DNA of 64,000 nt from Leucoraja erinacea (lineage: Eukaryota), in the NCBI RefSeq assembly GCF_028641065.1, contig NC_073393.1:16244001-16308000 (forward strand), read 5' to 3'. The position numbers and the translations under genes were made by a program. Positions 14,017-62,772 of the stretch are shown in pieces; positions within the stretch are counted from its first letter, which is position 1; each line of letters starts with the position of its first letter. Below the pieces are notes generated by a model, which saw nothing but the letters and a program-made list of their open reading frames with translations, had not been told where the DNA came from and searched no databases.

Positions 14017-14175
14017 TCATCTTGCTGTTGAATAGACAACCTCTGCTGCTCCGCTGTGTTTGTTTATCTGTAGCTCGGCATACTCTGCCTTTTCTGTGCA
14101 TTTTCTCACATTCCTCTTGCCAGTGAATGCTAAGTTCGCATACGACAGCTCGTCACTTGAATTCTCCCGCACTCT
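14017..14175 (-). CDS. Gene 1 terminal exon with ITIMs (RVRENSSDELSYANLAFTGKRNVRKCTEKAEYAELQINKHSGAAEVVYSTAR*)
   Basis: cttacag| acceptor, 52 codons to TGA. Canonical ITIM LSYANL plus AEYAEL and VVYSTA. Confidence 0.88.
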   Translation of the reverse strand, partial: RVRENSSDELSYANLAFTGKRNVRKCTEKAEYAELQINKHSGAAEVVYSTAR

Positions 14176-17100
14176 CTGTAAGCAGTTTTTTTAAACACAG
14201 TTAATTCATTGTTTTACTAGCTTTTGATATTGCTTCTCAAGTCGCATGTGAAACCGTCAGCCTTCACGTGCTTTGATTGTTATCTATTTTGCTAATCAAA
14301 CAGCCTCACCTGACCATACGAGGTTTGCACACCATCCCGTTTTCGTTTTGGAATGCAATTGGGTTTGCTCAAATGCGGTGGCGGCGATATAACCGGTCGC
14401 AGCTTCTGCTCCCTGCATCATTCGGAAAGAAAAGTTCTTATTATGTGACTCGACGCTTTCATGTCCTTCTGTCGCATTGTAAATGTTTTTTTCCCAAAAT
14501 AAAGATGAGGTGCATTCACGTATGCATTTATGTACATAAAATCGCCAAAATAAAACAGTGGCCGCCGAGTTGATGTTCAAAGGGGTAAATTGGGGGTACT
14601 ATGAATCAATGACTTTACAAGAACTGTGGCTTCAAAAGCCAAAATGTCTTTTTTCAAATACAATCAATAAAGCAACGTAATGGCAGTGTTTTACCGGTGT
14701 ACGTTTTAAGAATAAGCCATTGAAATGGCCAAGTGTGTTCGCTATATATAAATAAACGGTTCGAATATGATTGTCCGATCGCTTATTTTATAGCATTGTT
14801 CTCTGTAAATGTCATGCTGCAATAAAAACATAAACATACCAGCTGCTCGTGACGATTTGGTTCACCAAAACTTTTCTCTTTACCTGGAAAAAATAGTATA
14901 AAAAAGGCAGAATCATTTACTGAATTTCAGACAGTAATTACAAATCTACGTATACTCAGAATGAAGCCAGAAGTATTACTACGCTGCAGTAGTTCATCTA
15001 ACTGCCTCGTGGATTCGGCATCCTTGGTTCAATTGTGACGTTAGCAGCTTCCATTATGGAATCTTTTGATCGCATATGTTTACGCCGTTGCTCCAGATTC
15101 TGCCACATTGCAGCGAACACTGGTTAGGTCAAATGAACAGTCTCTTAACTCACAGTAGGCGATTGGCAGGAATAAATGACGGACATAATAGGTTACAAGG
15201 AAATACGTGGGAATTTGAGACGATAGAAGAAAACACCCTTCGGCCCACCTGCATCTCCAAACGTTACCCCTCACACCTAAATCTATACCCTCTTGTATTT
15301 GATATTTTATTCCCGGGAAAATCGTTCTGACAGTCTACCCTACCCATGCCTCTCCTAATTTCTATATGTTTGTATTTTCTTTATCCTGCTCATGGATTCG
15401 GACGATTTTGTGAACGTTGGGTGCTTGTGTTACTTGTACACTACTTTGTGCTGCCTGTAAGAGACAATCTATATTTTGAAAGTTTATAGCAGACCACGAA
15501 TCTCTGTTACCTAGCCATTGGTGACCTCACAGTGTCCTTGATTGGCCTTTCCCCATTGTGCACTCTCAATGGACTGGCTATTCGGGTATTAGTTCCGATT
15601 AAAGGCATTGACTGAACTGAGATGTTGCTGAAACAGTCACTATCGTTGACCCCAACGATTAATATTACAGTTCATTGTTATCGCTAGAACTTACCCTTAT
15701 TTTTCTGCTTGCGGCACCGCAACCAAATAACGATAATTAGCACTGAAATAAACAATCCACCCACCGCACAACCAGAAGCCACGACCGAAGGTAGTTTGCC
15801 GGCAGAACCTGTAGGGTTTGTAGGAATACATGTTATGGTGGTTGCCAGGTATTCTTCCCGAACGAGGGCGTGTGGGGCGGTTGGGGGTAGGGTGATGCTC
15901 AATGCTCGTGGTGAAAGTGAGACAGGATTGGCAACTCTACAGGAAGCACCGCAAATACAGGACAGCGTAAGATAACAAACTGTATACGAAGGACGACTTA
16001 CAATGTAAGTAAATGATGTCGCGTAAATGACGCGCAAATGACGCCCAAGTAGGACAAGCCCTAAGTCTTACAATATATACCCTGAAGTAATTAAAATATC
16101 GGACAAATTTGTTATGCTGAATTGATTTTCGAAACGAGCTGTGGGTTTAGGGACCTAAACGCTGCTGTATTGCGCGCCATTGATAGGCTGTGCGACTACA
16201 ATATGAGGGGATGGGTGTGAATCCTCCTAATTGAAGACATTCCCCCTATTCTGTCAATTTACTAAATGATACCGTGTCCGTTGGCGACGGTATTGACGCC
16301 TCAATTGAAGCCTCTCTTCTTTTAGAATTCCGTACTTGAATTTGTCACGGTGGCAGTGGGAGTGGATGCCGCACCGAGGAATTTCGGGAGCAGGGGTGGT
16401 TGGATTTTAGCGAAGGTGATCACGGCGAAGCAAAGGATTCGGCATCAGGATAAAAACCGAGGAAGCGTGAGGGAAAACCTAAGCGCCTGAAATCAGTTGT
16501 GCCGCCAAGTGTGGAATCAACGGTGCATTGGGAAACATTTTTGAAAGCAACATGAAAGAAACATCAACACTACCCAATAGAGAGGCAACATGTTTAAATT
16601 TGTTTTTCTATTTTGGAGGGCAAATAAGACATTTTCATTGAAAACGAATGTACAACGAATTGATAACAGGTTTGTTGCATCCGGTCGTTTTATTTTAAAT
16701 GAAAAAGAACTGCAACTTTCAATTGAACTAAGATGAATTTTCCTCGCGGCCTGGAACAAATAGAAATAGTAGTATATTTTTACGAACTGAACAGGGGATG
16801 GATTTGGTGGCATTGTACCTTGGTTACATTCGGAACCAGCGATGACAGCCTGGGCTGGAGTATTGAGGGAGACATGAGTTATTAAACAGGTATATTTGTT
16901 ATCGCTCTGAAATGGCGGCCTCGCGATCAAAGAGCTGGAAACCATATACAACCCTTCGGCGTTCTTCTTTGTTTCGATCTTTATTTCCGATGTTGTTTCG
17001 TTCCCATTTTTATACCAATTAAGCGTGAAATTCTCAGGATAGAATGCGGCTGTTTCACACACATGAATACAACTCGCGGCTGGATTATTTTCACGAGTCT

Positions 17101-17733
17101 TGGTGAAAATTTTCAGTGGAGTTGGAAGCGCTGCAGAACAGAACATGAACAAAATTAAATCACATTACGCCGTTGAAGGGTTGCTATTATTAACCTCGAG
17201 TGGGTTGTAATAATGACGCATTGGAAAATGTATTTGATATTACTTAGACTACGCGCTCATGCCTGGTCCAAATGGCTCTTTCAGGTCGGTGTTTCACGAG
17301 TCTTGCCGATTCAGTGATAATGACGCTTCATTCAAATATTTATGTATTAATCTTCTTAGAGTTTGAATAAATAATCTAATACAACTCGACATATGTTACC
17401 ACGATGGGATTCTCTGAGTTATTTACTCAAAGATAACGATGAGTTTTCTGCGCATCATTAATGATCAAATGAGAAAGCGAGTCGGTTTTGCAGAAGAAGC
17501 AGAGCAGGGGCACAGAAAATGGTGAGGAAAATATGTTGTTTTACCAACACATTACATCCTGCGAACTATATCAACTCTTTCAGGCGTACCTTCATAGGCG
17601 AGGACATACAATATAAATGGTAAACCTTAACTTTACCAAAAGCGTAAATCAACATTTAGAGTATTCGCGGCAGTTCTGGATTCAACATTGGACGAATGTT
17701 GTGATTGTCCCGTCATGGCTGTGTGGAGGGGGT

Positions 17734-17768
<35 letters not shown>

Positions 17769-20700
17769 TAACCTCACATTTATCCGCATTAAACTTCATC
17801 TGCCATGCATCTGCCCACTCCCACAACCTGTCCAAGTCACACTGCATTCTCATAGCATCCTCCTCATAGTTCACACTGCCACCCAGCTTTGTATCATCTG
17901 CAAATTTGCTAATGTTACATTGAACCCCTTCATCCAAATCATTGATGTATATTGTAAATAGCTGCGGTCCCAGCACCAAGCCTTGCGGTACCCCACTAGT
18001 CACTGCCTGCCATTCTGAAAGGGACCCGTTAATCCCTACTCTTTGTTTCCTGTCTGCCAACCAGTTCTCTATCCATGTCAGCACTCTACCCCCAATACCA
18101 TGTGCCCTAATTTTGCCTACTAATCTCCAATGTGGGATCTTATCAAATGCTTTCTGAAAGTCCAGGTACACTACGTCCACTGGCTCTCCCTTGTCCATTT
18201 TCCTACTTACATCTTCAAAAAATTCCAGAAGATTAGTCAAGCATGATTTCCCCTTGTAAATCCGTGCTCACTCGGACTGATCCTGTTGCTGCTATCCAAA
18301 TGTGCGGCTATCTCATCTTTTATAATTGACTCCAGCATCTTCCCCACCACCGATGTCAGGCTAACTGGCCTATAATTCCCCGTTTTCTCTCTCCCGCCTA
18401 TCTTGAAAAGTGGGATAACATTTGCTAACCTCCAATCCACAGGAACTGATCCTGAGTCTATAGAACATTGTAAAATTATCACCAATGTGTCCACGATATC
18501 TAGAGCCACTTCCGTAAGTACCCTGGGATGCCGACCATCAGGCCCTGGGGATTCACAGACATTATAATAGGCAACTCGTAGTAGATAAGGACCTAACGCT
18601 GGTAAATTGAATTTGAGTAGATGGAGAAATAGGTCGGATGGACTTGGAGGACCGGAAGGCTGTTCCTGTGCTGTGCAACTCTGAGACTCCAAGTAGCAAT
18701 GTGTTCAGACCGTGTTTATGATAAGAAACGTTTCCAAGTGAATGTTCTTGAGACATATATTTCCTTGTCTTCTGCTATTGTAATGTGAATAGGTGGTAGG
18801 ATTTGTGTTTTACTCTGGTAATATTTCGACACTATTTTTGTGACGAAGGTTAATTCCCGGGCTGGCGGGACAGTCATACGTTGAAAGAATGGAGTGGCTG
18901 GGCTTGTATACACTGAAATTTAGAAGGATGGGAGTGGATCTTATTGAAACATAGAAGACTATTAAGGGATTGGACATGTTAGAGGGAGGACACCTGGCCA
19001 GATGTTGGGGGAGTCCAGTACCAGGGGCCACATTTTAAGAATAAGGCGTAGGCCATTTAGAACGGAGATGAGGAAAACCTTTTTCACCCAGAGTTGTGAA
19101 TCTGTGGAATTCTCTGCCTCAGAAGACAGTAGAGGCGGATTTTCTGGATGCTTTCAAGCGAGTTAGATGCAGCTATTAAAGATAGCGGAGTCAAGGGATA
19201 TGGGGAGATGGCAGGTTGTGTATGATCAGCCATGATCACAGCGAATGGCGGTGCTAGCTCGAAGGGCCGAATGGCCTACTCCTGCACCTATTGTCTACTG
19301 TCTACTGACATTGCTTTATCATAATTTCCCAATACAATAAAAGATGTTTACCTACCTCTTTAAAATCCAACATACGGTAACTAAAAACGTTAGCATTTAT
19401 TGAGAGAGGACTGGAATGTTAAAAAAAAAACAGGGATGTAATGCTGAGGCTTCATAAGGCAATGGTCAGGCCGCGTTGGCGTATTGTAAACAATTTTGGG
19501 CCCCCATATCTGAGGAGGGATTTTCTAGCGTTGAAAATAGTTCAGATGAGATTTACGAGAATTATCCAGGGGGCGATTGGGTTAACGTATATTGAGCGAT
19601 TGGCGGATCTGGGCCGATGCAATCTGTAGTTTAGAAGTATATGGAGGGGACCTTATTGAAACTTACCAAATGGTGTAAGGACCCGGATAGAGTGGATGTG
19701 GACAGGGTGTTTCCAGGACTGGGAGAGTATAAGACCAGTGGGCACAGTCTCATAACAAAAGGACATTCGTTTGGAAAGGAGACACTGAGGAATTTATTTA
19801 GTCAGAGGGTGATGAAACGATGGAACTAATTACCTCAGATGGCCGTGGCGGCCAAGACTTCTATATTTTTAAACTGAGATTGACGGGTTTTTTAGTTTTA
19901 TGTGAAAGGTTATGAGTCGAAGACAGGAAAATTAGGTTAAAAGGGAAATATTGTTCAGCCATGATTGAATGGCCCAGTAGCCTCGATGGGTCGAATGGTC
20001 TTAGTCTGGTCCTATGATTTATGAACATGAATTTATGAACTTTGTATATTACGTTCCATTGCGCTTCACGTCAGAATTATAAAATTTAGGGAGATTAATT
20101 AGGTGATGCCAGAGTGAATTGGCCAAGGCCATTTAAAATATATGATCTGAGTAACATTCTCCAACTAAAGAAGTAGAACATGAGCAGAGGTTCACTTTCA
20201 GTTAATGCTGACAACACTGGAGCGATTGCATCCTGCTTTGGGCAAAACTGTACAATTCAACCGACTGCAACTCAATGAACATTCAAGGAAATATGTTCTT
20301 GGACTTATTGGATTTCCATAGGTTAAAGATCCATGGTGAACTTTGAAGGAATTTAAAAAACTATTAATTTGATTTTATAAAATCGGACATCGCGTTTCCA
20401 ATTTTGGCGAGATGAGTGAAGTGGAACGGAATTTCATAAAGGAGGATAGGCATGCGGAGGTTCAACCCTCTTGTTCGCAGAATGTAGATAGAGCGGTAGA
20501 TCAGATATACTGAACATAACATACACAAAAAGGCATTAAAGGACATCTTCACAGTGATTCGGTTTGCAAACCATTATATTCCATGATAAAAAACAATTAT
20601 TTTTCGCTTACCATATACTATTAGACGTGATCCGGTTGAATTTCTTGGAGCCATTCCTTTACGAATCACCGAACACTGATACACTCCAGAATCTTGAATC

Positions 20701-20932
20701 TTTGCATTCTTCAACTCAAAGTACCCGCTTGCTCGATCACTCACGCCAAAACGTTTCCTGCCGTCGGTACTTGCAAGTTGGTATTCATTCTCGCCCTGTT
20801 TCCACCATTTGACTCTTACCCGAGATTGGTCTTGAGAAATGGGGAATATGCAGTAGAATTTGGTGTTCCCTCCTTTGTGTAAAATCACTTCTTTGGGCAT
20901 TTGCTGTACGTTGTACGAAATCTGTTCCCCAC
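14017..20932 (-). CDS. Gene 1: inhibitory VJ-C1 IgSF receptor (SIRP/NKp30/VJC1-like), 5 coding exons found, leader not found, ~316 aa without leader
   Basis: Five exons with GT-AG boundaries join in frame (intron phases 1,1,1,0) into V-set domain, C1-set domain, uncharged TM and ITIM tail. Confidence 0.88.
14840..14883 (-). CDS. Gene 1 cytoplasmic exon 1 (GKEKSFGEPNRHEQL)
   Basis: ttttttccag| ... |gtatgt. 44 nt, phase 1 to 0, bridging the TM and last exons in frame. Confidence 0.8.
15695..15808 (-). CDS. Gene 1 transmembrane exon (GSAGKLPSVVASGCAVGGLFISVLIIVIWLRCRKQKNK)
   Basis: ccctacag| ... G|gtaag. Uncharged hydrophobic span with GxxxG, followed by a basic stop-transfer sequence. Confidence 0.88.
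16819..17130 (-). CDS. Gene 1 C1-set Ig exon, 312 nt
   Basis: ttctgcag|CG...CAA G|gtacaa. C1 hallmarks C-x4-FYP, W, Y-x-V-SS-L and YTC-x-I-T-H. Confidence 0.92.
17767..18552 (-). mobile_element. CR1 RT fragment in the gene 1 V-C1 intron (paralogous copy at ~37816-38601)
   Basis: ORFs [13 protein letters not shown]..., [21 protein letters not shown]. Confidence 0.9.
18850..20040 (+). mobile_element. Two CR1 3'-end fragments
   Basis: TRGH-type C-terminal motif and 3' UTR gggccgaatggcctactcctgcacctattgtctac. A second, older copy spans ~19385-20040. Confidence 0.8.
20612..20932 (-). CDS. Gene 1 V(J) exon, 321 nt
   Basis: cctaacag|GT...TAT G|gtaag. FYC, KWW, DSGVYQC and a J-like G strand [10 protein letters not shown]. 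Confidence 0.92.
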
Positions 20933-21734
20933 CTGTTAGGAAACACAGTCAAGGAAAGGTGATTATGTTGATGACGGCAAACGGACGGTAGAATAAAAAG
21001 GACGACCTTACATGTAGCTGCATTAAGGTGTAAACGTGTCGGAAATCATTTTATAAGCTAAAGCAGATGGAACAACGAACAAAGTCGTGCCTATGCAAAT
21101 ATTCCCAACGACTGCCAGTAAGTGAAATATCATACTGGTTTCCATTCCGGCCACCAGCTACAACTAGTTTGTCGGCAGAAAGCAGCGTTGGCAAGTGTAA
21201 AGTGAGGGCGTGGTTTACAGCCGATGAAGGATGATTCATATCCTGTAACCGAAGGTTGCAATTATCATTAGACTGGTTGGATTTCTAAAATCAAATCGGC
21301 CGCGCGTAGCAAAGTAGTGGAAATTATAATTTAAATTTTATTCTTCTTAGTGCTTTTACTCCTACTCTCGATCTTAAATTTAATTCTCGATCATATAAGA
21401 CATATAAATGATGACATAGAAAATTGGCAAGATTTCAAGCAGACATGCCCCATTTATGTCCACAATTAGTTCATTAATACCATTTTTTTTGCACCGTTTG
21501 GACTATCATCGATATTCAAAATCAATTTGCCAATAGTAAGTAGGATTTTTTTCGCAGACTGCATAAAATAAATGCCTGATACGCTGGTTGTTGACTCGAG
21601 CGTGTGCTCCATCGATCAGCATCTGCTTATGTGTCAGTCCGTGATCACATGTGTTCCATGTCGTGATTCAGTGGGCGGTTGGGTAGAGGCACTGGGACCG
21701 AGCGTTGATCAAACCGGATTCTCGTTGCATCGTG

Positions 21735-22158: not shown

Positions 22159-23152
22159 AAGACTCATTGCATCCTTCAAGTTCACACAGCTCAGACCATC
22201 ATTCCCAGCCGTTAGAACAGCTTCGCTCCTCTAACGACCGACCAACGTAATCATCTAACGGCGGATTGAACAACGAGAATAAATAGTTTATGCATGCAAA
22301 ACATCGTTTATGGAAACAGTACGGATTGGTGGTTGTGCTCGTATAACTATTAACTGATCCGTTTCTAATGCGCGGTATTCATGACTTAAGCATAACTTTG
22401 AAAACTGTAAGAGTGAATTCCTAACAGTATCAAGTGCATAAGCCTAACATTCGTTCTGCTGATTACATATTATCTAATATGAAAATGATGATCAAGCATT
22501 TCGTCTGCTCGGTGTGAAATATATATGTGTTCTTTGGTTGTTCCACTACCTGGCAATTTCAGTTTTATTGGATTAGGGGAATGATATGGCAATTTTCTTT
22601 CACATTAATCTGTAATTGAAACACATGTTAAACTACGATTTTTATTTATCTCTTGATAAAGGTTGAACGATGTATTTCTGTGTCGTGAAGAGTTTGCGCA
22701 AAACGGAGCCAGAATTAAAAGAAAATATCACTTTTACTAACTTCACGCATCTGGAATAATGTTTATCAATAAAATATTCGACTCCGCATTCTCCCTTTTT
22801 TATTTTTTTTATTCTGAAGTTGATGTGAAGGAATATAGTCAGCCATAAGTTTCACGTTAGTTTATTGACACGTGTACCGAGGTACAATGAAAAGCTTTTG
22901 TTGCTTGTTATCCAGTTAGCGGAAAGACAATACATGACTACAACTGACCATTTCGTGTAGAGACAAATGTTACGGGAACAACGTTTAGTGCAAGGTCCCA
23001 GCAAAGTCCGAATCAACGATAGTCCGATCGTCACCAGTGATATGATGCAAAACAGTATCAAAGGCCTTTCTGCAGCCTTGTCCTTAGTTTGGAGATACAG
23101 CGTTCTTTGGCCCACCGAGTCCGCGCCGACCTACGACCGCACGACCGCACAT

Positions 23153-24335
23153 TCAGAAGGCTTTCGACAAAGTCCCACATGAGAGATTAGTATACAAACT
23201 TAAAGAACACGGTATTGGGGGTTCAGTATTGATGTGGATAGAGAACTGGTTGGCAAACAGGAAGCAAAGAGTAGGAGTGAACGGGTCCTTTTCACAATGC
23301 CAGGCAGTGACTAGTGGGGTACCGCAAGGCTCAGTTCTGGGACCCCAGCTATTTACGATATACATTAATGATTTGGACGAGGGAATTGAATGCAACATCT
23401 CCAAGTTTGCGGATGACACGAAGCTGGGGGGCAGTGTTAGCTGTGAGGAGGATGCTGGGAGGCTGCAAGGTGATTTGGATAGGCTGGGTGAGTGGGCAAA
23501 TGTTTGGCAGATGCAGTATAATGTGGATAAATGTGAGGTTATCCACTTTGGTGGCAAAAACAGGAAAACAGACTATTATCTAAATGGTAGCCGATTAGGA
23601 AAAGGGGAGATGCAACGAGACCTGGGTGTCATGGTACACCAGTCATTGAAAGTAGGCATACAGGTGCAGCAGGCAGTGAAGAAAGCGAATGGTATGTTAG
23701 CTTTCATAGCAAAAGGATTTGAGTATAGGAGCAGGGAGGATCTACTGCAGTTGTACAGGGTCTCGGGGAGACCACACCTGGAGTATTGCGTACAGTTTTG
23801 GTCTCCAAATCTGAGGAAGGACATTATTGCCATAGACGGAGTGCAGAGAAGGTTCACCAGACTGATTCCTGGGATGTCAGGACTGTCTTATGAAGAAAGA
23901 CTGGATAGACTCGGTTTATACTCGCTAGAATTTAGGAGATTGAGAGGGAATCTTATAGAAACTTACAAAATTCTTAAGGGGTTGGACAGGCTAGGTGCAG
24001 GAAGATTGTTCCCGATGTTGGGGACGTCCAGGACAAGGGGTCACAGTTTAAGGATAAGGGGGAAATCCTTAAAGACCGAGATGAGAAAAACATTGTTCAC
24101 ACAGAGAGTGGTGAATCTCTGAAACTCTCTGCCACAGAGGGTAGTTGAGGCAAGTTCATTGGCTATATTTAAGAGGGAGATGTGGCCCCTGTGGCTAAAA
24201 TGATCAGGGGGTATGGAGAGAAGGCAGGAACAGGATACTGAGTTGGATGATCAGCCATGATCATATTGAATGGCGGTGCAGGCTCGTAGGGCCGAATGGC
24301 CTACTCCTGCACCTATTTTCTATGTATCTATGTAT
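23153..24335 (+). mobile_element. CR1 LINE, 5'-truncated, RT C-terminal half plus 3' tail
   Basis: 297-aa ORF with [10 protein letters not shown] and FADDTKL. Tail ttctatgtatctatgt. Confidence 0.95.
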
Positions 24336-24562
24336 TAACACTATCCTGCACGTACTGGTGACACTTTTTACATTTATTCCAAGCCAATTAACTTTCAAAC
24401 CTCTACGTATTTGTTGTGTGAGAGGAAACCGAAGATCTTGGAGAAAATACACGCAGGTCAATGTGAGAACGTACAAACTGCGTGAAGCACCCGCGGTCAG
24501 GATCGAACCCAGGTCTCTGGCGCTGGAAGGCAGTAGCTCTATCGCTGAACCACCTTGCCGCC
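24336..24562 (-). mobile_element. tRNA-derived SINE
   Basis: ggatcgaacccaggtctctggcgctg, a box B on the minus strand. Homologous to 4485-4705. Confidence 0.7.
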
Positions 24563-24984
24563 CATGTACTTGGTTATTTCTTCAGGAAACTCAATCAAAT
24601 TTGTGGGACACAATCTCACATGTACCTGACCATGCTGGTTATGTCTACTCAACCCCCCTTTATTGAAATATGTCGATATTATATCTCAGAATCCTCTCCA
24701 GCAACTTGTCTACCATAGATGTTACCTCACAAATTTCTTATTCCGTCTATTAATGTCACATGTGGGAACGAAATCATGGATGCTTTTGTCAGACGCGCAA
24801 ACGTCCTAGTGATCTCAAACAATTCAAAAAAATTGTAGAAACTGTTATCCCACTATTTTAAAACAGAATAAGAGTGTGAAAACGAGTATTTGCAAGGCAG
24901 TTGCATTTGGGAAAAGCTGGAATATAATACTGATGGATTGTAATACAGTAGTTTCAACGCCTAATCAGGATTATTTCACGGAAT

Positions 24985-27169: not shown

Positions 27170-27997
27170 AGAGCAAGCAAACAAGTTTATTTATATAGCA
27201 AATTTCAGCAACAAGGCAATTCAAAGTGCTTTACACAAAGCATTAAAGAGCAATCAAAGTAATTAAAAAAACTTTCATTAAAAAGAATCGAAAATAAAAA
27301 CAAGCTAAAATAAAATAAGACAAGTATAAAATACAAGAATAAAAGTTACAGCACAGTGTAAGAAATGAATAATTATTTTATTTAATCAAAGGCAATGTCA
27401 AACAGAAAAGACTTCAGCCCCGATTTCAAAGAATTGAGAGATGGTGCTGACCTGCATTTTTCTGGAAGTTTGTTCCATATATGTGGTGCATAAAAACTAA
27501 ACGCTGCTTCTCCAAGTATAGTTCTGACTCTGGGGACAGAAAGCAGCCTGTCCCTGATGATCTCAGAGGTCTGGATGGTTCATAATGCAGCAGAAGATCA
27601 GCAATGCATTTTGGCCCAGAACATTCAATGATTTATAAAGCAACAGTAATATTTTGAAATCAATTCTTTGACAGTAAAGACCTCAAAACTGGAGTGATGT
27701 GATCCACTTTCTTGGTCTTAGAGAGCAGTGTTCTGAATCAGCTGCAGCTGTCTAATCGATTTTCTGGGGAGACCTGTGAAGACAGCATTACGGTAGTCAA
27801 GTCTACTGAAGATAGATGCATGGACAAGATTTTCCAAATCCTGCTGAACCATTGGTCCTTTAACCCTTGATATATTCTTAAGGTTATAGTAGGCTGACTT
27901 TGTAATTGTCTTAACGTGGCTGTTGAAATTCAGGTCTGAGTCCATGACTACACCAAGAGTTCTGGCTTTGTCCGTGATTTATAACATTGCCGGTTGA
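27170..27997 (-). mobile_element. L2-like LINE 3' remnant
   Basis: DSDLNFNSHV...KSAYYNLKNISR...LVHA.IFSRLDY motif. A longer copy lies at 58345-59990. Confidence 0.75.
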
Positions 27998-30842
27998 AGC
28001 CGCCATTCAATATGATCATGGCTGATCATCCAACTCAGTATCCCGTACCTGCCTTCTCTCCATACCCCCTGATCCCCTTAGCCACAAGGGCCACATCTAA
28101 CTCCCTCTTAAATATAGCCAATGAACTGGCCTCAACTACCCTCTGTGGCAGAGAGTTCCAGAGATTCACCACTCTCTGTGTGAAAAAAGTTCTTCTCATC
28201 TCGGTTTTAAAGGATTTCCCCTTTATCCTTAAGCTGTGACCCCTTGTCCTGGACTTCCTAACATCGGGAACAATCTTCCTGCATCTAGCCTGTCCAACCC
28301 CTTAAGAATTTTATAAGTTTCTATAAGATCCCCTCTCAATCTTCTAAATTCCAGAGAGTATAAACCAAGTCTATCCAGTCTTTCTTCATAAGACAGTCCT
28401 GACATCCCAGGAATCAGTCTGGTGAACCGTCTCTGCACTCCCTCTATGGCAATAATGTCCTTCCTCAGATTTGGAGACCAAAACTGTACGCAATACTCCA
28501 GGTGTGGTCTCACCAAGACCCTGTACAACTGCAGTAGAACCTCTCTGCTCCTATACTCAAATCCTTTTGCAATGAAAGCTAACATACCATTCGCTTTCTT
28601 TACTGCCTGCTGCACCTGCATGCCTACCTTCAATGACTGGTGTACCATGACACCCAGGTCTCGCTGCATCTCCCCCTTTCCCAATCGGCCACCATTTAGA
28701 TAATAGTCTGCTTTCCCGTTTTTGCCACCAAAATGGATAACCTCACATTTATCCACATTATACTGCATCTGCCAAACATTTGCCCACTCACCCAGCCTAT
28801 CCAAGTCACCCTGCAGTCTCCTAGCATCCTCCTCACAGCTAACACTGCCCCCCCAGCTTAGTGTCATCTGCAAACTTGGAGATATTGCCTTCAATTCCCT
28901 CATCCAGATCATTAATATATATCGTAAATAGCTGGGGTCCCAGTACTGAGCCTTGGGGTACCCCACTAGTCACTGCCTGCCATTGTGAAAAGGACCCGTT
29001 TACTCCTACTCTTTGCTTCCTGTTTGCCAGCCAGTTCTCTATCCACATCAATACTGAACCCCCAATGCCTTGTGCTTTAAGTTTGTATACTAATCTCTTA
29101 TGTGGGACCTTGTCGAAAGCCTTCTGGAAGTCCAGATACACCACATCCACTGGTTCTCCCCTATCCACGCTACTAGTTACATCCTCGACAAATTCTATAA
29201 GATTCATCAGACATGATTTACCTTTCGTAAATCCATGCTGACTTTGTCCTTCGTAATAAGGTGGATGAGTTGAATGTTTCGTAATAAGGTGGATGAGTTG
29301 AATGTGCAGATAGCTATTAATGACTATGATATAGTTGGGATCAGGGAGACATGGCTTCAGGGTGACCAAGGCTGGGAGCTGAACATCCAGGGATATTCAA
29401 TATTCAGGAGGGGTAGACAGAAAGGAAAAGGAGGTGGGGTAGCGTTACTGATTAGAGAGGGGATTAATGCAATGGAAAGGAAGGACATTAGTTTGGAGGA
29501 TGTGGAATCAGTATGGGTAGAGCTGCGAAACACTAAGGGGCAGAAAACGCTGGTGGGTGTTGTGTACAGGCCACCTAGCAGTAGTAGTGAAGTTGGAGAT
29601 GGTATCAAACAGGAAATTAGAAATGCGTGCGACAAAGGCAAAACGGTTATAATGGGTGACTTCAATCTACATATAGATTGGGTGAATCAAATTGGCAGGG
29701 GTGCTGAGGAAGAGGATTTCTTGGAATGTATGCGGGATAGTTATCTAAATCAACATGTAGAGGAACCAACGAGAGAGCAGGCTATTTTAGACTGGGTATT
29801 GAGTAATGAGGAAGGGTTAGTTAGCAATCTTGTTGTACGTGCCCCCTTGGGCAAGAGTGACCATAATATGGTTGAGTTCTTCATTAGGATGGAGAGTGAC
29901 ATTGTTAATTCAGAAACAATGGTTCTGAACTTAAAGAAAGGTAACTTTGAGAGTATGAGACGTGAATTGGCCAAGATTGACTGGCAATTAATTCTAAAAG
30001 GGTTGACGGTGGATATGCAATGGAAGACATTTAAAGACTGCATGGATGAACTACAAAAATTGTTCATCCCAGTTTGGCAAAAGAATAAATCAGGGAAGGT
30101 AGTACATCCATGGATAACAAGGGAAATCAGGGATAGTATCAAAGCGAAGGATGATGCGTACAAATTAGCCAGAAAAAGCAGCATACCGGAGGACTGGGAG
30201 AAATTCAAAGACCACCAGAGGAGGACAAAGGGCTTAATTAGGAAAGGAAAAATAGATTATGAAAGAAAACTGGCAGGGAACATAAAAACTGACTGCAAAA
30301 GTTTTTATAGATATGTGAAAAGAAAGAGATTAGTTAAAACAAGTGTAGGTCCCTTGCAGTCAGAAACAGGTGAGTTGATCATGGGGAACAAGGATATGGC
30401 GGACCAATTGAATAACTACTTTGGTTCCGTCTTCACTAAGGAAGCCATAAATAATTTGCCGGAAATAGCAGGGGACCGCGGGTCAAAGGAGTTGGAGGAA
30501 TTGAGTGAAATCCAGGTTAGCCGGGAAGTGGTGTTGGGTAAATTGAATGGATTAAAGGCCGATAAATCCCCAGGGCCAGATAGGCTGCATCCCAGAGTAC
30601 TTAAGGAAGTAGCTCCAGAAATAGTGGATGCATTAGTAATAATCTTTCAAAACTCTTTAGATTCTGGAGTAGTTTCTGAAGATTGGCGGGTAGCAAACAT
30701 AACCCCACTTTTTAAGAAGGGAGAGAGAGAGAAAATGGGGAATTACAGACCAGTTAGTCTAACATCGGTAGTGGGGAAACTGCTAGAGTCAGTTATTAAA
30801 GATGGGATAGCAGCACATTTGGAAAGTGGTGAAATCATTGGA
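27998..30842. mobile_element. Young CR1 with 5' inversion: 5' part on plus (29250-30842), 3' part on minus (29249-27998)
   Basis: The plus ORF ends at ...ESGEIIG and the minus ORF resumes GQSQHGF. Over 500 codons are uninterrupted. The element is absent from the paralogous block. Confidence 0.9.
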
Positions 30843-31007
30843 CTTCGAAATCTTAGTGTACACGTGTCCACGTGTATTCCAGACAGGAACAACACATTAT
30901 GCATTAATGTATCTGAATTAAATAAGAATAATGTAGGAAAGTGGCACTGATTATTCGGGATTATGCTGGTTGCCAGAGCAGTGAACCCAACCAAATGATC
31001 TACTGTC

Positions 31008-31345
31008 AGGAAACATGTTCCCGATGTTGGAGGAGTCCAGAACCAGGGGCCACAGTTTAAGAATAAGGAGTAAGCCATTTAGAATGGAGACGAGGAAACA
31101 CTTTTTCTCCCAGAGAGTGGTGAGCCTGTGGAATTCTCTGCCTCAGAGGGCGGTGGAGGCAGGTTCTCTGGATGCTTTCAAGAGAGAGCTAGATAGGGCT
31201 CTTAAGAATAGCGGAGTCAGGGGATATGGGAAGAAGGCAGGAACGGGGTACTGATTGGGGATGATTAGCCATGATCACATTGAATGGCGGTGCTGGCTCG
31301 AAGGGCCGAATGGCCTACTCCTGCACCTATTGTCTATTGTCTACT
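31008..31345 (+). mobile_element. CR1 3' end (copy at ~60202-60540)
   Basis: FPMLEESRTRGHSLRI...WNSLP and (ctattgt)n tail. Confidence 0.9.
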
Positions 31346-32316
31346 TTTACTGTGTTGAAAATGGTGGAGCTGGAGTCCAATGAATACTGGAGCAAGACAT
31401 TCTAGCGAATTTCATGGAAAAGCCTTTTAGAAGTACCGGCAGGTTTGTTTTTCATACTGGCAAGGGTGTTTTTATTCCAGGTAAATGTATTAATTTGATC
31501 GTTGCATTCTGGTTGGGCGGAAATGGGATATCCGGGAATTTCATGACACGGATTCAAATTATTGTGCGGCAGCGGTTTTCTCGTTAATTAACTATATTTT
31601 CGCTATTTTCCTACAATGATTAGGTTCCTGAAAGTGCTTGAAAACTAATGATCCTACCTTGACAGCAGAACACTGTGGACAACAATGGTCGTAGTATAAA
31701 TGCGTTAAAAAAAATATTCTGCCAGAATAGATTTCAAAAGAAATTGATCAAACTCTCGACAAAATGTTGTGATGGTTGTTGTGAAAAATTAAGTGTCTAT
31801 AGTCTTTGGTATGCTGAAAACTGTCTGTATTTAGGTCAGAATGAAATGAGACAGAACAATATAGGGCCTAAATCCCTCGCCTCATAGTTTTTCTTTCGGA
31901 AATAACAAATACATTGAAAATGACCATGCGATCAGACGTAACCATAAAACGTCTATTTTAGTTATGTAACGGATAATAATAATGTAATTCAAAGTATTTG
32001 GAAAGTTACTTTATCAGTTTAACACAACACATATTACAAAATATGCATTAATTTTCATAGCAAGGCATCAATATTTAATCATTAATCCCACAAGTAACTC
32101 ACAATCAATAATGTAGACGTGAGTACGTCGACCGGTACTGAACATATTATTTTTCCAGAATTTCAGTGCCTATATCTAATTCGTCTGTCGGATGAAATGC
32201 AAATTATGAATGTTTAAGTTTTGTAGGCTACTGTGTAGGCACATCTTACAATTACAATAATCTTGGGTAACCATACAGTATTCGCTGGAAGGCTGGGGCT
32301 TCAATGGTGGCCAGGT

Positions 32317-32392
32317 TCATTGGGTGGCGCTTGGTTGATCCTGCTTGAGGTTTCCAACACTCTCTATTTGATGGCTTTTTCTTACATGGACC
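32317..32392 (-). CDS. Gene 2 terminal exon ([24 protein letters not shown])
   Basis: Long polypyrimidine acceptor ttttctccaccctctcttgtttgtgcag|. A phase-2 join to the TM exon gives 24 codons then TGA. Identical in copy 3. Confidence 0.65.
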
Positions 32393-33577
32393 CTGCACAA
32401 ACAAGAGAGGGTGGAGAAAACCTTGCTAACTATCGGCACAATTTAATTATGCAAACATTTGTTCTATAGAAGATAGTTTAAGGATACTTTCTCAGGCGGA
32501 TTAAATATATTCAACAGTTATAAATAACATCACATTTATAAATGGGTACAATTTCAGTAAAGACAAAAGTTTACTTTTATCCCATTTACTCCAAAGGGAT
32601 TGAAAACCATAAGTATTTTAAGTTTAAAAAAGAGTGAGTGGACTCATCGCATGAAGTAAAATTTGTAGAGACTGAAGTTATCATTTTTCATTGCTGGTTG
32701 AAAACCCGGATTGAGAGGGAGCAAGAGGGGGGGGGGGGGGGGGGGGATCGGGGTCTGGCTGAACCTGAATTTCTTTCAAGTTTTATTTTATTTATGCCGT
32801 TTTTTTATCTCTGCATTTTAGGTGTAAATGCAATTGAGGAACATAGAAACAATTGATAAGGATTTTGCATGTAATTTTGCACTATTTTCGCCTATTCTTC
32901 GGGAAATAATTTCAAATTGAAAGTGAAAAGACCGCGGATATTCGCATCTTCTCCTGGAAAATATGCATCTTGGAATGACTTGCCTGTTTCATCAGTCTGG
33001 ATGCAGACTTTAGAGAAACATGAAACTTTACTCTTTGCATTTGATAAAATATCTGCGCTTCAACACTCTTCAATATTGAATATTACCGGCGAAGAATGAT
33101 TGAAGACAAAAGTTGCACGAGAGGGAGCGTGATCGTACCGGCTCTTGGATTCCTTGCCAGCTCATTGGCTTTAACCAGAATAAACAACTTGAGCATTCAC
33201 CGATGCTTATAGTTAATGTACTTGCAACCAGTTCCTCTTACTGTCAACGCTGTGTATAATTCTTCATGCTAAGTTGCCAAGAATATATTGGCATTTCAAA
33301 GAATTTACATCACAGTCCAAGTCCTTCAGATTTAAATTATAATTATATTTATGATCCTCTGCGCCATACACAAACTTTCGCAAATATCTTTCCTAATTCC
33401 ATGAAATATTGTACAAACATATTTTTTCCATATATAACGTACCTTTTATCAAACAGCAACTGACAGTGCGTTCCAATAACGGCACCAATCAGGATCAGGA
33501 GCACCAGAAAGCCCAGAGCAGGTCTAATGTGGAAGGCGTAAGCATTACCTGCAGAAATAATAGGAGCAAATTAATTC

Positions 33578-33617
<40 letters not shown>

Positions 33618-36600
33618 TTGGTGAAATTTGTGCTAATTATTTCTGAGTATAGAAACGATGTCTGCTTGGGAATGCATTCTGCGGAGATTATTCTTCGCCG
33701 GAGTGAACGGGGAGATTCATAGAGAAGGGCGGAATAGCGGAATAAATGTGTGCGTGCCGGGATGGGGGAAGGGCACAGGAAAGAAATACGGGGAAGGGAG
33801 AGTGTTACATAATTGGAAAACTGGTGAATTTAATGTTCCCACCATTGCTTATAATATTGATAGCTAAATTCGATATCTAAATTAACAATCACCAGATGCA
33901 CTTGTAAATCCATATATTTCATGGTTAAATGTAAAGGGAAAGTATACGGTTAATGGCCCTTTACAATATTGATCCGCAGAGGAATGTTGAGGTCGTGATC
34001 AATAGCTTCCTGAAAGTGACAACACCAGTAGAAAGAGTGGTAAAGAAGGCGTGTGGCGTGTTTGCCTTCATTGGCCGCGGCATTGAACCGTCAGGGAGTC
34101 ATGATACGGCTCCCTGGCGCTTTAGCTAGAAAGCATTTGTAATAATACGTGCAGTTATTGCCGCCTCATTACAGGAAGGATGTGAAGAAGTTTACAAAAG
34201 GTTGCCTGAATTAAGGGGCATTTGCTGCAAGGGGGGATTGAACAAACATGTGGAAGATTGAAGGGAGACCTGATAGAAGTATACACAATTATGAGAGACA
34301 TAGATAGTGTAGCCAGTCAGAATCTTTTTGCAAGGATAGCAATATCAAAGAATAGGGGCATAGTATTAAGTTGACAGGGGCAACGATTATAGGAGACTAC
34401 ACCAGGCCCGTTCCCCAAGGCAAAATCCCGCCACTGACCCATATCCCCCAACTGCGCAGGAGTGGCTGAGGGGTTCCCGTTGTGACGCCAGGGATCCCCG
34501 TTATGACTCGATTCATGGCAACCCTCCCCCAACTGCGCCTCGCCATCCCTCATCCTACCCCGCCCTATCCTCCTCTATTCCCCCTCTTGCCCCAGCATTC
34601 CCTCCTCCTCCTCCTCTACATCCTTCCTCTTCTTTCCCCTCCTCCTCCCCTCCCCACTCCCTCCATCACCTCTCCCTCCCACTCCTTTCCCCTACCCACA
34701 GCCACTCCCTCCCTCCATAACCCCTCTCCCCTTCCTAGCCCCCTTCTCTCCCTGAATCCTCCTAATTGAAGACATTCCCCCTATTCTGTCAATTTACTAA
34801 ATGATACCGTGTCCGTTGGCGACGGTATTGACGCCTCAATTGAAGCCTCTCTTCTTTTAGAATTCCGTACTTGAATTTGTCACGGTGGCAGTGGGAGTGG
34901 ATGCCGCACCGAGGAATTTCGGGAGCAGGGGAGGTTGGATTTTAGCGAAGGTGATCACGGCGAAGCAAAGGATTCGGCATCAGGATAAAAACCGAGGAAG
35001 CGTGAGTGAAAACCTAAGCGCCTGAAATCAGTTGTGCCGCCAAGTGTGGAATCAACGGTGCGCAAAATTGGGAAACATTTTTGAAAGCAACATGAAAGAA
35101 ACATCAACACTACCCAGTAGAGAGGCAACATGTTTAAATTTGTTTTTCTATTTTGGAGGGCAAATAAGACATTTTCATTTTAAACGAATGTACAACGAAT
35201 TGATAACAGGTTTGTTGCATCCGGTCGTTTTATTTTAAATGAAAAAGAACTGCAACTTTCAATTGAACTAAGGTGAATTTTCCTCGCGGCCTGGAACAAA
35301 TAGAAATAGTCGTTTATTTTTACGAACTGAACAGGGGATGGATTTGGTGGCATTGTACCTTGGTTACATTCGCAACCAGCGATGACAGCCTGGGCTGAAG
35401 TATTGAGGGAGACATGAGTTATTAAACAGGTATATTTGTTATCGCTCTGAAATGGCGGCCTCGCGATCAAAGAGCTGGAAACCATATACAATCCTTCGTC
35501 GTTCTTCTTTGTTTCGATCTTTATTTCCGATGTTGTTTCGTTCCCATTTTTATACCAATTAAGCGTGAAATTCTCGGGATAGAATGCGGCTGTTTCACAC
35601 ACATGAATACAACTCGCGGCTGGATTCTTTTCACGAGTCTTGGTGAAAAATTTCAGTGGAGTTGGAACTGCTGCGGAACAGAACATGAACAAAATTAAAT
35701 CACATTACGCAGTTGAAGGGTTGCTATTATTAACCTCGAGTGCGTTGTAATAATGACGCATTGGAAAATGTATTTGATATTACTTAGACTACGTGCTCAT
35801 GCCTGGTCCAAATGGCTCTTTCAGGTCGGTGTTTCACGAGTCTTGCCGATTCAGCGATAATGTAGGTTTATCTTCTAAGAGTTTGAATAATAAATCAAAT
35901 ACAACTCGACATATGTTACCACGATGGGATTCTCTGAGTTTTTTACTCAAAGATAACGACGAGTATTCTGGGGGCGAGTACTCAAGTCCTGTGCTACGCA
36001 GCTAGCTCCAGTGCTCACTACATTATCCAACCTCTCCCTGGACAAGTCCGTGGTCCCTGCCTGCTTCAAAAAATCCAACATTGTACCGGTACCAAAAAAT
36101 GCCTCCCCAGCCTGTCTGAATGACTACCGTCCGGTGGCCCTTACCTCGGTAGTCATGAAATGCTTTGAGAGGCTGGTGAAGAAACACATCTGCGCCTTCC
36201 TCCCTCGGAACATGGACCCGTTACAGTTCGCATACCGTCCGAACAGGTCCACTGACGATGCGGTCTCCCAGGTCTTGCACACCGCTCTCTCCCATCTAGC
36301 CAGAAGGGGGGCTACGTGAGGATGCTGTTCATAGACTACAGTTCAGCCTTCAACACGATAGTCCCCACCAGACTGGCTGGGAAGCTAATGGAATTGGGGC
36401 TCAACACCTCCCTGTGTGCCTGGGGCCTGGACTTTCTCACCGCCAGGCCCCAGGTAGTCAAGATGGGAGGGAATACATCGAAGTCCCTCACCCTGAGCAC
36501 AGGATCACCCCAGGGTTGCGTCCTCAGCCCCCTATTGTACTCCCTGTACACACATGACTGTGTGGCTAGGTTCAGCTCCAACTCAATAATTAAGTTTGCT

Positions 36601-37746
36601 GATGACACTGTGGTGGTGGGCCTGATCTCAGACAACGACGAGAAGGCCTACCGGGAGGAGGTGGCTGGTCTAGCACTCTGGTGCCAGGATAACAGCCTCC
36701 TCTTGAACATCAAAAAAACGAAAGAGCTGATCATGGACTTTAGGAGGGCACATCATCCGAGGACGTACACTCCATTGAGGATAAATGGGGATCCTGTGGA
36801 TAGGGTGAACTGTTTTAAATATCTGGGAGTCCACATCTCCGAGAATATATGACATGGGCATCACACGCATCAGCACTCGTGTGTAAGGCAAGGCAGCGCC
36901 TTTACCACCTCAGGCAATTGAGGAAATTCAGAGTGTCTCCGAGGATCCTCCAGTGCTTCTACGCAGCGGCGGTGGAAAGCATCTTGTCCGGGAACATTAC
37001 CATCTGGTTTGGGAATTGCTCTGCCAAGGACAAGAAGGCTCTGCAGAGAGTAGTGCGTTCAGCCGAACGCACTATGGGAACTTCACTTGCCCCCCTGCAG
37101 GAACTGTACATCAGGAGGTGCAACTCCAGAGCCAACAATATCATGAGAGACCCCTTCCACCCCTGCAACGGACTGTTCCAGCTGCTATGGTCAGGCAAAC
37201 GCCTCCGTTGCCATGCGGTGAGAACAGAGAGGTTGAGAAGGAGTTTCTTCCCAGAGGCCATTCGGTCTGTAAACGCCTATCTCACCAGGGACTAACTCTA
37301 CAGAACGTTTTTCTTTCCATTATTTATTATGTAAAAGAATATGTGTTATGATTGTGTTTATAGTTTGTTTGGTTGTTGTCTTTTGCATAAAAGTCCACGA
37401 GCATTGCCACTTTCATTTCACTGCACATCTCGTATGTGTATGTGACAAAGAAACTTGACTTGACTTGACTTTAATGATCAAGTGAGAAAGCAAGTCGGTT
37501 TTGCAGAAGAAGCAGAGCAGGGGCACAGAAAATGGTGAGGAAAATATGTTGTTTTACCAACACATTACATCCTGCGAACTATATCAACTCTTTCAGGCGT
37601 ACCTTCATAGGCGAGAATATACAATATAAATGGTAGTATCTTATGTAAGAACTTTACCAAACGCGTAAATCAACATTTAGAGTATTCGCAGCAGTTCTGG
37701 ATTCAACATTGGACGAATGTTGTGATTGTCCCATCATGGTTGACCT

Positions 37747-37817
<71 letters not shown>

Positions 37818-40225
37818 TAACCTCAACCTCACATTTATCCGCGGATTAAAACTTAATCTGCCATGCATCTGCCCACTCCCACAACCTGTCCAAGTCACAT
37901 TGCATTCTCATAGCATCCTCCTCATAGTTCACACTGCCACCCAGCTTTGTGTCATCTGCAAATTTGCTAATGTTACTTTTAATCCCTTCATCCAAGTCAT
38001 TGATGTATATTGTAAATGGCTGTGGTACCAGCACCAAGCCTTGCGGTACCCCACTAGTCACTGCCTGCCATTCTGAAAGGGACCCGTTAATCCCTACTCT
38101 AAGTTTCCTGTCTGCCATCCACTTCTCTATCCATATCAGCACTCTACCCCCAATACCATGTGCCCTAATTTTGCCCACTAATCTCCAATGTGAGATCTTA
38201 TCAAATGCTTTCTGAAAGTCCAGGTACACTACATCCACTGGCTCTCCCTTGTCCATTTTCCTACTTATATCTTCAAAAAATTCCAGAAGATTAGTTAAGC
38301 ATGATTTCCTCTTGTAAATCCATGCTCACTCGGACTGATCCTGTTATCGATATGTCCGGCTACCTCATCTTTTATATTTGACTCCAGCATCTTCCCCACC
38401 ACCGATGTCAGGCTAACTGGTCTATAATTCCCCGTTTTCTCTCTCCCGCCTATCTTGAAAAGTGGGATAACATTTGCTAACCTCCAATCCACAGGAACTG
38501 ATCCTGAGTCTATAGAACATTGTAAAATTATCACCAATGTGTCCACGATTTCTAGAGCCACTTCCGTAAGTACCCTGGGATGCCAACCATCAGGCCCTGG
38601 GGATTCACAGACATTATAATAGGCAACTCGTAGTCGATAAGGACCTAACGCTGGTAAATTGAATTGGAGTAGATGGAGAAATAGCTCGGATGGACTTGGA
38701 GGACCGGAAGGCTGTTCCTGTGCTGTGCAACTCTGAGACTCCAAGTAGCAATGTGTTCAGACCGTGTTTATGATAAGAAACGTTTCCAAGTGAATGTTCT
38801 TGAGACATATATTTCCTTGTCTTCTGCTATTGTAATGTGAATAGGTGGTAGGATTTGTGTTTTACTCTGGTAATATTTCGACACTAATTTTGTGACGAAG
38901 GTTAATTCCCGGGCTGGCGGGACAGTCATATGTTGAAAGAATGGAGTGGCTGGGCTTGTATACACTTAAATTTAGAAGGATGTGAGTGGATCTTATTGAA
39001 ACATAGAAGACTATTAAGGGATTGGACATGTTAGAGGGAGGAAACCTGTCCCGATGTTGGGGGAGTCCAGTACCAGGGGCCACATTTTAAGAATAAGGCG
39101 TAGGCCATTTAGAACGGAGATGAGGAAAATCTTTTTCACCCAGAGTTGTGAATCTGTGGAATTCTCTGCCTCAGAAGACAGTGGAGGCCGATTTTCTGGA
39201 TGCTTTCAAGCGACAGTTAGATGCAGCTATTAAAGATAGCGGAGTCAAGGGATATGGGGAGATGGCAGGTTGTGTATGATCAGCCATGATCACAGCGAAT
39301 GGCGGTGCTAGATCGAAGGGCCGAATGGCCTACTCCTGCACCTATTGTCTACTGTCTACTGACATTGCTTTATCATAATCTCCCAATACAATAACAGATG
39401 TTTACCTACCTCTTTAAAATCCAACATACGGTAACTAAAAACGTTAGCATTTATTGAGAGAGGATTGGAATATTAAAAAAAAAAGCAGGGATGTAATGCT
39501 TCATAAGGCAATGGTCAGACAGCGTTGGAGTATTGTAGACACGTAACCAGTGTTGACGAGAAGAGCGAAGATGGTCAAACATTGTGTGAATTGAGAAACG
39601 CAGCGTGGAGCTTCAACCTTTCTGTTACACGCAGAGATTTGATACAATAATAATACATATTTATTAAACATAATATCGACAAAAGTATAAAAATATATCT
39701 TCACAGTGAATGGGTTTTACCGCATGTTCTATTTGATATATATTACATTATGTTTCACCCCTCAATTATTTTCGGTTACCATTCCATTCCACCCTTATGT
39801 TCATCATAATATACACACAACGTATTAAAGGACATGGTGAATCGGTATTCCCACCTATTATATTCCATAATAAATACCTCCTTCTCCAATTATTTTTCGC
39901 TTACCATATACTATTAGACGTGATCCGGTTGAATTTCTTGGAACCATTCCTTTACGCGTCACCGAACACAGATACACTCCAGAATCTTGGATCGTTGCAT
40001 TCTTTAACTCAAAGTACCCGCTTGCTCGATCACTCACGCCAAAACGTTTCCTGCCGTCGGTACTTGTAAGTTGGTATTCACTCTCGCCCTGTTTCCACCA
40101 TTTGACTCTTACCCGAGATTGGTCTTGAGAAATGGGGAATATGCAGTAGAATTTGGTGTTCCCTCCTTTGTGTAAAATCACTTCTTTAGGCATTTGCTGT
40201 ACGTTGTACGAAATCTGTTCCCCGC
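32317..40225 (-). CDS. Gene 2: activating-type VJ-C1 IgSF receptor (Arg in TM, short Tyr-free tail), leader not found
   Basis: Four exons join in frame (intron phases 1,1,2). The V and C1 exons each differ from gene 1 by 6 aa, while the TM and tail exons are unrelated to gene 1. Confidence 0.82.
33443..33548 (-). CDS. Gene 2 TM exon ([36 protein letters not shown])
   Basis: ttatttctgcag| ... AAAAG|gtacgt. 106 nt, phase 1 to 2. Hydrophobic span with Arg at its N-terminal edge. Confidence 0.85.
33580..33616. repeat. (TG)n microsatellite in the intron just 5' of the activating TM exon acceptor (copy at ~62769-62804)
   Basis: Direct sequence. Confidence 0.95.
35359..35670 (-). CDS. Gene 2 C1 exon, 312 nt
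   Basis: ttccgcag|CAG... (NAGNAG acceptor) to CAA G|gtacaa. 6 aa differences from gene 1. Confidence 0.92.
35971..37470 (+). mobile_element. Rex1/Babar-clade LINE, 5'-truncated, in the gene 2 intron only
   Basis: [47 protein letters not shown], and a (cttga)n tail. Empty site at 17450/17458 in gene 1. Confidence 0.85.
39905..40225 (-). CDS. Gene 2 V(J) exon, 321 nt
   Basis: Same splice sites as the gene 1 V exon. 11 nt and 6 aa differences by manual alignment. Confidence 0.92.
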
Positions 40226-62738: not shown

Positions 62739-62772
62739 CTGCAGAAATAATAGGAGCAAATTAATTCCTGTG

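Follow-up and report, generated by a model that had tools for sequence, protein, structure and literature searches.

The question raised by this 64,000-nucleotide stretch of the Leucoraja erinacea genome (RefSeq assembly GCF_028641065.1, contig NC_073393.1, positions 16,244,001 to 16,308,000; hereafter the window) is whether two putative membrane-receptor genes, lying in tandem 19 kb apart on the same (minus) strand, constitute an inhibitory/activating pair, and to which receptor system such a pair would belong. The stretch probably carries paired inhibitory/activating receptor genes of a multigene chondrichthyan V-C1 family whose ectodomains have been homogenised. A preliminary description of this DNA had recognised the signature of a paired-receptor family, and the anatomy of the locus fits that signature, with both forms recurring in annotated relatives. 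As far as sequence can carry it, the paired-receptor reading is thus well supported by anatomy and comparison.

The exon coordinates first proposed for both genes proved correct to the base. Every proposed exon is bounded by AG and GT, and a single frame stays open throughout each gene; the frame was checked on exons joined in silico, and the searches, alignments and fold model were run exon by exon. All exons given here are on the minus strand. Gene 1 begins with a 55-nt leader exon at 21145-21091 (METSMIFHLLAVVGNICI plus one nucleotide, phase 1), which was read directly from the sequence and encodes a peptide similar to the leaders of the stingray relatives P0028 and P0003. Its donor (window 21089-21091) is GC, in AG/GCACGA; the gene 2 counterpart is GT. 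The V-set exon (20932-20612; Pfam V-set E 9e-8) encodes 106 residues of a compact V domain with a J-like end and is followed by a C1-set exon (17130-16819; Pfam C1-set E 1.3e-10). The transmembrane (TM) exon at 15808-15695 has an uncharged core (..ASGCAVGGLFISVLIIVIWL RCRKQKNK), and the cytoplasmic part consists of a 44-nt exon 4 (14883-14840, KEKSFGEPNRHEQL) and a last exon 5 (14175-14017, stop at 14019-14017) with the tail motifs LSYANL, AEYAEL, and VVYSTA. The neutral membrane segment and inhibitory tail attributed to this gene were both recovered, in that the TM contains zero charged residues and LSYANL is a canonical immunoreceptor tyrosine-based inhibitory motif (ITIM) that fits (S/I/V/L)xYxx(I/V/L). 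Homology extends through the three exons: across 40 residues the TM exon shares 57.5% identity with annotated Mobula P0180 (E 1e-8), exon 4 KEKSFGEPNRHEQL aligns with GKEKCFTEVNRRE of Hemitrygon P0183, and the last exon shares 60% identity with the annotated P0183 tail across 53 residues (E 3e-16). Judged by this homology to annotated stingray proteins, the signalling exons of gene 1 are real.

Gene 2 follows the same plan up to the membrane. Its leader exon (40391-40337; 55 nt, MEIGIIFNLLIVGRNIYI plus one nucleotide, phase 1) has a GT donor, and its V-set (40225-39905; 106 residues, Pfam V-set E 6e-8) and C1-set (35670-35359; 103 residues, Pfam C1-set E 1.4e-10) exons score, like those of gene 1, above the curated Pfam cut-offs. 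A K to T change relative to gene 1 creates an additional NAT sequon in the V exon. The TM exon (33548-33443, 106 nt; acceptor ..tttctgcag, donor AAG/gtacgt) encodes a hydrophobic core of 17 residues with an Arg at its outer edge; the last coding exon (32392-32317, stop 32319-32317) is followed by ATTAAA at 32079 and AATAAA at 31476. The tail, for which about 30 tyrosine-free residues had been claimed, comprises 33 residues with zero tyrosines and no signalling motifs. A blastp-short search of this tail against the family relatives returned zero matches.

For the gene 2 TM exon, plain BLAST gave no clear answer, and a profile built from five shark R..DH segments was insufficient and was set aside, as it scored the two Arg-TM exons at E 0.015-0.046 and a chance plus-strand peptide better. 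It was replaced by a profile of ten Arg-bearing TM segments, taken from annotated relatives of other species only, which was scanned over the 2121 stop-to-stop peptides in all six frames of the window. Exactly three matches were obtained, the TM exons of gene 2 (E 5.4e-6) and gene 1 (5.2e-6) and a peptide at 62760-62542 (1.6e-6), after which the best E was 0.77. The Arg residues of the gene 2 and 62.7 kb exons align to the Arg of the profile, and the same position is a Gly within xGCAxGG in gene 1 and the ITIM-type relatives. The gene 2 TM exon is therefore, on the strength of the profile, a genuine family TM exon of the Arg type. Two earlier claims are modified by this result. The Arg-bearing membrane segment of gene 2 stands, with its Arg aligned to those of relatives, but the residue lies at the outer edge of the core and not mid-membrane. 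Similarly, the membrane and tail exons had been called unrelated between the two genes, which applies to the tails and to the DNA but not to the TM exons: both match one family TM profile and are distant homologues.

The near identity of the ectodomains was upheld, with 12 differences over 209 residues (about 211 had been counted before). Of these, 6 fall among the 106 residues of the V exons (10 of 318 nt differ) and 6 among the 103 of the C1 exons (8 of 309 nt). These exons lie within a block that is ~95% identical between the genes and extends on the minus strand from the V exon through the intron and the C1 exon to 600 bp beyond it (16218-20992 for gene 1; 34753-40285 for gene 2, in which alone a retroelement of 1.5 kb has inserted, at 35970-37471). 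A reverse-transcriptase fragment of a long interspersed nuclear element (LINE) in the V-C1 intron is common to both copies of the block. The 3' edge of the block is sharp, the TM and tail exons lie outside it, and the 3' flanks beyond it have no detectable similarity; 5' of the block, identity drops to ~80% over the leader exon and the upstream DNA. Because the 5' flanks are ~80% identical and the 3' ends unalignable around a ~95% block, genes 1 and 2 are best read as old paralogues in which the V-to-C1 block has recently been made alike, by gene conversion or unequal exchange.

A word-indexed protein search with the C1 open reading frame (ORF) returned a sole match, P0001, a genomic ORF of the same species on a Logan contig, and the database searched therefore holds no annotated model of either gene. 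P0001 is 99% identical to the gene 1 C1 ORF (window 16520-17152; gene 2 counterpart 35180-35692) but agrees with gene 2 in two places, REKN and KINYYF; from its sequence it is an allele or a further copy of mosaic character, as expected under ongoing conversion. The membrane-proximal end of the C1 domain carries one Cys in gene 1 (AGSECNQ, 16826-16837) and two in gene 2 (AGCECNQ, 35366-35377), which are absent from the stingray relatives. These cysteines could form interchain disulfides.

The ectodomain had been described as a VJ-C1 unit, and the larger part of that description holds. An antigen-receptor-like VJ-C1 plan is present in the germline-joined V, the phase-1 split leader usual in V genes, and a single C1-set domain with FYP and YxCxVxH motifs (the hallmarks AFYPENF and YTCLITH are found in the C1 exon), but the J motif is only partly kept. 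The last V strand of the family has the consensus NGTGSxLxV, resembling the J-like G.G..L.V, and this is degenerate in the window genes, which read NSTGSRLIV with the first Gly changed to Ser. The family NGTGS (window NSTGS; 20630-20638 and 39923-39931) doubles as an N-glycosylation sequon, and it may be speculated that a glycan at this G-strand bulge would hinder V-V pairing of the immunoglobulin (Ig) or T-cell receptor (TCR) type. The V exon is short, with 59 residues between its two cysteines, and its AlphaFold2 model (predicted local distance difference test 87) has no clear C'/C'' strands. Foldseek matched this model best to shark V-NAR, CD79b, NKp30, and TCR V-alpha (E ~2e-8, TM-score 0.70-0.77, identity 16-24%). 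Many V domains score nearly alike, so the modelled fold points to a short V-type fold and not to kinship. At the sequence level, the V exon and a V profile matched I-set domains, V-NAR, TCR V-alpha, and CD79b. Against solved structures, the C1 exon scored 2.7e-15 with UrIg2, 7e-15 with IgM, 3.8e-13 with SIRP-alpha, and 6.7e-13 with SIRP-gamma, and a full-length family profile matched IgA heavy chain, UrIg2 (1e-36), and SIRP-alpha 2wng (8e-32), the last colinearly over V and C1.

A full HMMER scan with the V exon recovered 177 proteins at E <=1e-3 and 59 at E <=1e-10, with relatives up to 60% identical to the gene 1 V exon. Thirty clusters were looked up and 29 of these are from cartilaginous fish; the other, a Vipera protein, was matched in several stretches and was discarded as a member of another family. 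The relatives come from Hypanus, Hemitrygon, two species of Mobula, Narcine, Pristis, Leucoraja, Scyliorhinus, Mustelus, Carcharodon, Heterodontus, two species of Chiloscyllium, Stegostoma, Heptranchias, and Callorhinchus, and the members of one species lie on one chromosome or scaffold. The window genes are 52-62% identical to annotated stingray and shark relatives in V and ~55% in C1. The C-termini of the relatives fall into two main types, an ITIM-rich tail with an uncharged xGCAxGG TM and a short tail with an Arg/Lys TM, both of which occur in annotated gene models from sharks, rays, and a chimaera. The ITIM form is represented by P0183 from Hemitrygon and P0174 and P0180 from Mobula, and the Arg-TM form by P0003 from Hypanus, P0181 and P0081 from Scyliorhinus, and P0182 from Mustelus, with the same TM and tail exon types as the window genes. 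One relative, P0018, has two C1 domains. The names given automatically by NCBI include SIRP-alpha-like, SIRP-beta-1-like, tapasin-related-like, NCR3LG1-like, Ig lambda-like, and MHC class II beta-like. These proteins are a coherent chondrichthyan family hidden under varied automatic names, of which no description was found in the literature searched, itself incompletely covered. The suggestion that automated annotation could miss the pairing was not borne out for other species, in which NCBI models of both forms exist under SIRP- and tapasin-like names. A further word-indexed search with stingray P0003 returned more relatives and no close match to the window genes.

A tree of the V domains, made by a quick method on 106 columns and with many weak forks, places the two window genes as sisters (support 99) in a well-supported shark/ray clade that holds both C-terminal types. 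At least 10 inhibitory/activating switches are required on this tree, and opposite tails on near-identical V domains recur elsewhere in the family (P0018/P0019 and P0153/P0174).

Many features of the locus are those of known paired families. The KIR, LILR, PILR, CD300, CEACAM1/3, and teleost NITR/NILT receptors likewise consist of linked genes with near-identical ectodomains, an ITIM tail in one form and a charged TM with a short tail in the other, and they too have undergone repeated inhibitory-to-activating switches and ectodomain homogenisation. Their ectodomains, unlike those of the window genes, are C2/I-set or V-only and lack a membrane-proximal C1-set domain, which otherwise only SIRP has among such families, and they belong to other lineages. 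Teleost NITR, considered as an identity for the window genes, was rejected, since NITR combine V with or without an I domain, have no C1, and are limited to bony fish, whereas a C1-set domain is present here and all relatives looked up are chondrichthyan. The elasmobranch UrIg and UrIg2 (PDB 9dmx) share a germline-joined V exon, a split leader, C1-type domains, and the lack of rearrangement, and among solved structures it is UrIg2 that the C1 exon matches best. UrIg2 has a VJ and nine or more C domains and is described as a single gene per species with no inhibitory or activating forms (PMC12227049). The window genes were not assigned to UrIg/UrIg2, which have a VJ and three or more C domains and one gene per species; here a single C1 is followed directly by the TM, in a multigene cluster with ITIM and Arg-TM forms.

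Under the paired-receptor reading, the family would consist of type I membrane receptors, each built from a split leader, a compact V-set domain that ends in a J-like strand, a single C1-set domain, a membrane segment, and a tail. Gene 1 would be the inhibitory form, its ITIM tyrosine recruiting SH2 phosphatases once phosphorylated. Gene 2, together with a partial gene 3 described below, would be of the activating type, with a conserved Arg at the TM's outer end and a short, motif-less tail, and would depend for any signalling on an adaptor that carries an acidic residue in its TM and an immunoreceptor tyrosine-based activation motif, of the FcR-gamma, CD3-zeta, or DAP12 type. Conversion or unequal exchange would keep the V-to-C1 block ~95-97% alike, such that both forms would see the same presumed ligand. 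The sequence itself shows the exon structure, the types of domain, the kinship of each signalling exon with those of relatives, and where the block ends; the ligand, adaptor coupling, expression, and splicing in vivo are the parts of this explanation that we infer.

The third gene is represented by 3' exons only. Its Arg-TM exon copy (62738-62633, minus strand; family TM profile E 1.6e-6, as above) differs from that of gene 2 at 6 nt, with 4 amino-acid changes (4 non-synonymous and 2 synonymous changes), and retains the Arg and both splice sites, and its short-tail exon copy (61571-61496, minus strand) is identical in sequence to the gene 2 tail exon. Both are within a ~97% identical repeat, in which 24373-34195 recurs at 55508-64000 directly after a run of Ns at 55407-55506, and the V and C1 exons would fall past the end of the window. 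Upstream of gene 2, a truncated and frame-broken start of a V exon (40776-40674, minus strand) has been left as a relic. Together with leader-like DNA up to ~41119 it is 65-83% similar to the 5' end of gene 1 and is a dead partial duplicate.

Among the listed sequencing runs, none is recorded as containing this DNA in the form of RNA. Four species-labelled RNA runs (tissue unrecorded, each sampled at 5-25%) were mapped to window 31500-35900 and gave zero reads on any exon. This interval contains the C1 exon, which would have caught reads from gene 1 as well, with zero found there too, and the null result is no evidence either way on splicing or expression. Reads fell only at a G-run (32715-32753) and a dispersed repeat (34264-34733); they run on into unlike sequence and therefore come from elsewhere in the genome.

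Several observations weigh against the interpretation of the locus as a functioning receptor pair. The GC donor of the gene 1 leader may be that of a rare GC-AG intron that works, or the first splice of gene 1 may be impaired. In the gene 1 tail, one of the three tyrosines lies in a canonical ITIM (LSYANL), AEYAEL and VVYSTA are weakened relative to the stingray TEYAEL and VVYSKV, and one tail exon of the stingray ITIM proteins is absent. The gene 2 Arg borders the hydrophobic core and might lie outside the bilayer, and constraint between the ectodomains is weak, with ratios of non-synonymous to synonymous differences (pN/pS) of ~0.5 for V and ~0.8 for C1 from a mere 18 changes. The RNA runs lend no support, and the third copy adjoins an assembly gap, so that it could be either a real tandem gene or an artefact of assembly that repeats the haplotype of gene 2. 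Some of these points would also be expected if gene 2 (and gene 3) were silent or decaying chimeric duplicates, in which a copy of gene 1's ectodomain block had come to lie beside 3' exons belonging to an old activating gene, with no product made. The absence of exon reads, the pN/pS near 0.5-0.8, and the 4 to 2 ratio of non-synonymous to synonymous changes between the TM exon copies are in keeping with such decay, the nearby V relic indicates a cluster that sheds broken pieces, and the duplicates are young, so that open frames prove little. Yet none of the five gene 2 exons has a broken frame, their splice sites are canonical and the leader donor is GT, each of the two TM copies retains the Arg and its splice sites, the same architecture occurs in NCBI gene models of many relatives, and the lack of gene 1 reads in the same runs suggests that the expressing tissue was simply not sampled. 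Silent duplication is considered unlikely. Less likely still is that the short-tailed Arg form does not signal and acts, with no adaptor, as a decoy or competitor for the gene 1 ligand or for a pathogen mimic of that ligand. The position of the Arg at the membrane edge and the lack of a known adaptor would suit such a role, and the literature on other rapidly evolving paired families, such as CEACAM, considers decoy functions, but the Arg position is conserved in short-tailed members of distant species, which fits a protein contact within the membrane better than chance.

A different kind of alternative concerns classification and is compatible with pairing, namely that these genes are the cartilaginous-fish orthologues of SIRP, with SIRP-alpha as the inhibitory and SIRP-beta as the activating form. 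In its favour, many relatives carry SIRP-alpha-like or SIRP-beta-1-like NCBI names, the family profile runs colinear with SIRP-alpha 2wng over V and C1 (the 8e-32 match), and the C1 matches SIRP-alpha and SIRP-gamma at ~5e-13. The two systems also resemble each other in having a V domain with a J-like strand followed by a C1-set domain, and an ITIM form paired with a short-tailed form with a basic TM. The tail pattern, xTYAxLxL ... TEYAExQ, may resemble that of the SIRP-alpha tail; a word-indexed search with the tail of a chimaera relative returned family members only and was uninformative on this point. Conversely, UrIg2 and Ig heavy chains score equal to or better than SIRP, and the V of the window genes has no specific likeness to a SIRP V, none being present among the best 60 PDB matches of either the single V exon or a 14-sequence V profile. 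Further, one C1 lies between V and TM where SIRP has two (V-C1-C1), and SIRP-beta has a mid-TM Lys as its basic residue, in contrast to the Arg found here at the outer edge of the TM. Detection of the family was also confined to cartilaginous fish: every one of the 29 relatives that were looked up and have a single V match is chondrichthyan, and no bony-vertebrate SIRP was seen among the V-exon matches. SIRP orthology is regarded as doubtful. In anatomy the window genes would work like SIRP-alpha and SIRP-beta, and membership of the SIRP family is not established; a SIRP-type V and two C1 domains were not found. It can be proposed, tentatively, that they belong to an independent, non-SIRP receptor system specific to chondrichthyans, with a compact, V-NAR-like, germline-joined V and one C1 on the VJ-C1 plan of UrIg, Ig, and TCR, in inhibitory/activating clusters kept alike by conversion.

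The window contains no further host gene; what else it holds are remains of retroelements and transposons, together with two minisatellites. The minisatellites, at 6004-7551 and 7932-8376, have periods of 51 and 48 nt in ~26 and ~9 copies, with long spurious ORFs on both strands. LINE-type fragments are present at 8399-10500, 17713-18692, 23150-24330, 28000-30950, 36011-37295, 37846-38744, 42800-43600, and 56256-57935, and the endonuclease and reverse-transcriptase domains tested among them score at Pfam E 1e-9 to 3e-22. An ORF at 50977-51435 resembles, judged by eye, a fragment of a Tc1/mariner-type transposase.

Paired receptors are a well-known kind of system, of which the skate V-C1 version is a new variant. 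The germline receptors that steer natural killer (NK)-like and myeloid cells in cartilaginous fish are poorly known, few being described apart from NKp30 and the skate MDIR genes. A clustered, fast-switching V-C1 family with ITIM and Arg-TM forms is a concrete set of genes in which to test for an NK-like or myeloid role. Additionally, the origin of the antigen receptors is approached through a small number of VJ-C1 genes that do not rearrange (UrIg, UrIg2, and SIRP), and in this family they gain a relative that is multigene and membrane-bound. Should the proposal of an independent, non-SIRP system hold true, it would provide, for the oldest jawed vertebrates, a first candidate for a polymorphic system of self or pathogen sensing of the NK or myeloid type, and the antigen receptors would have in this family a cousin that does not rearrange.

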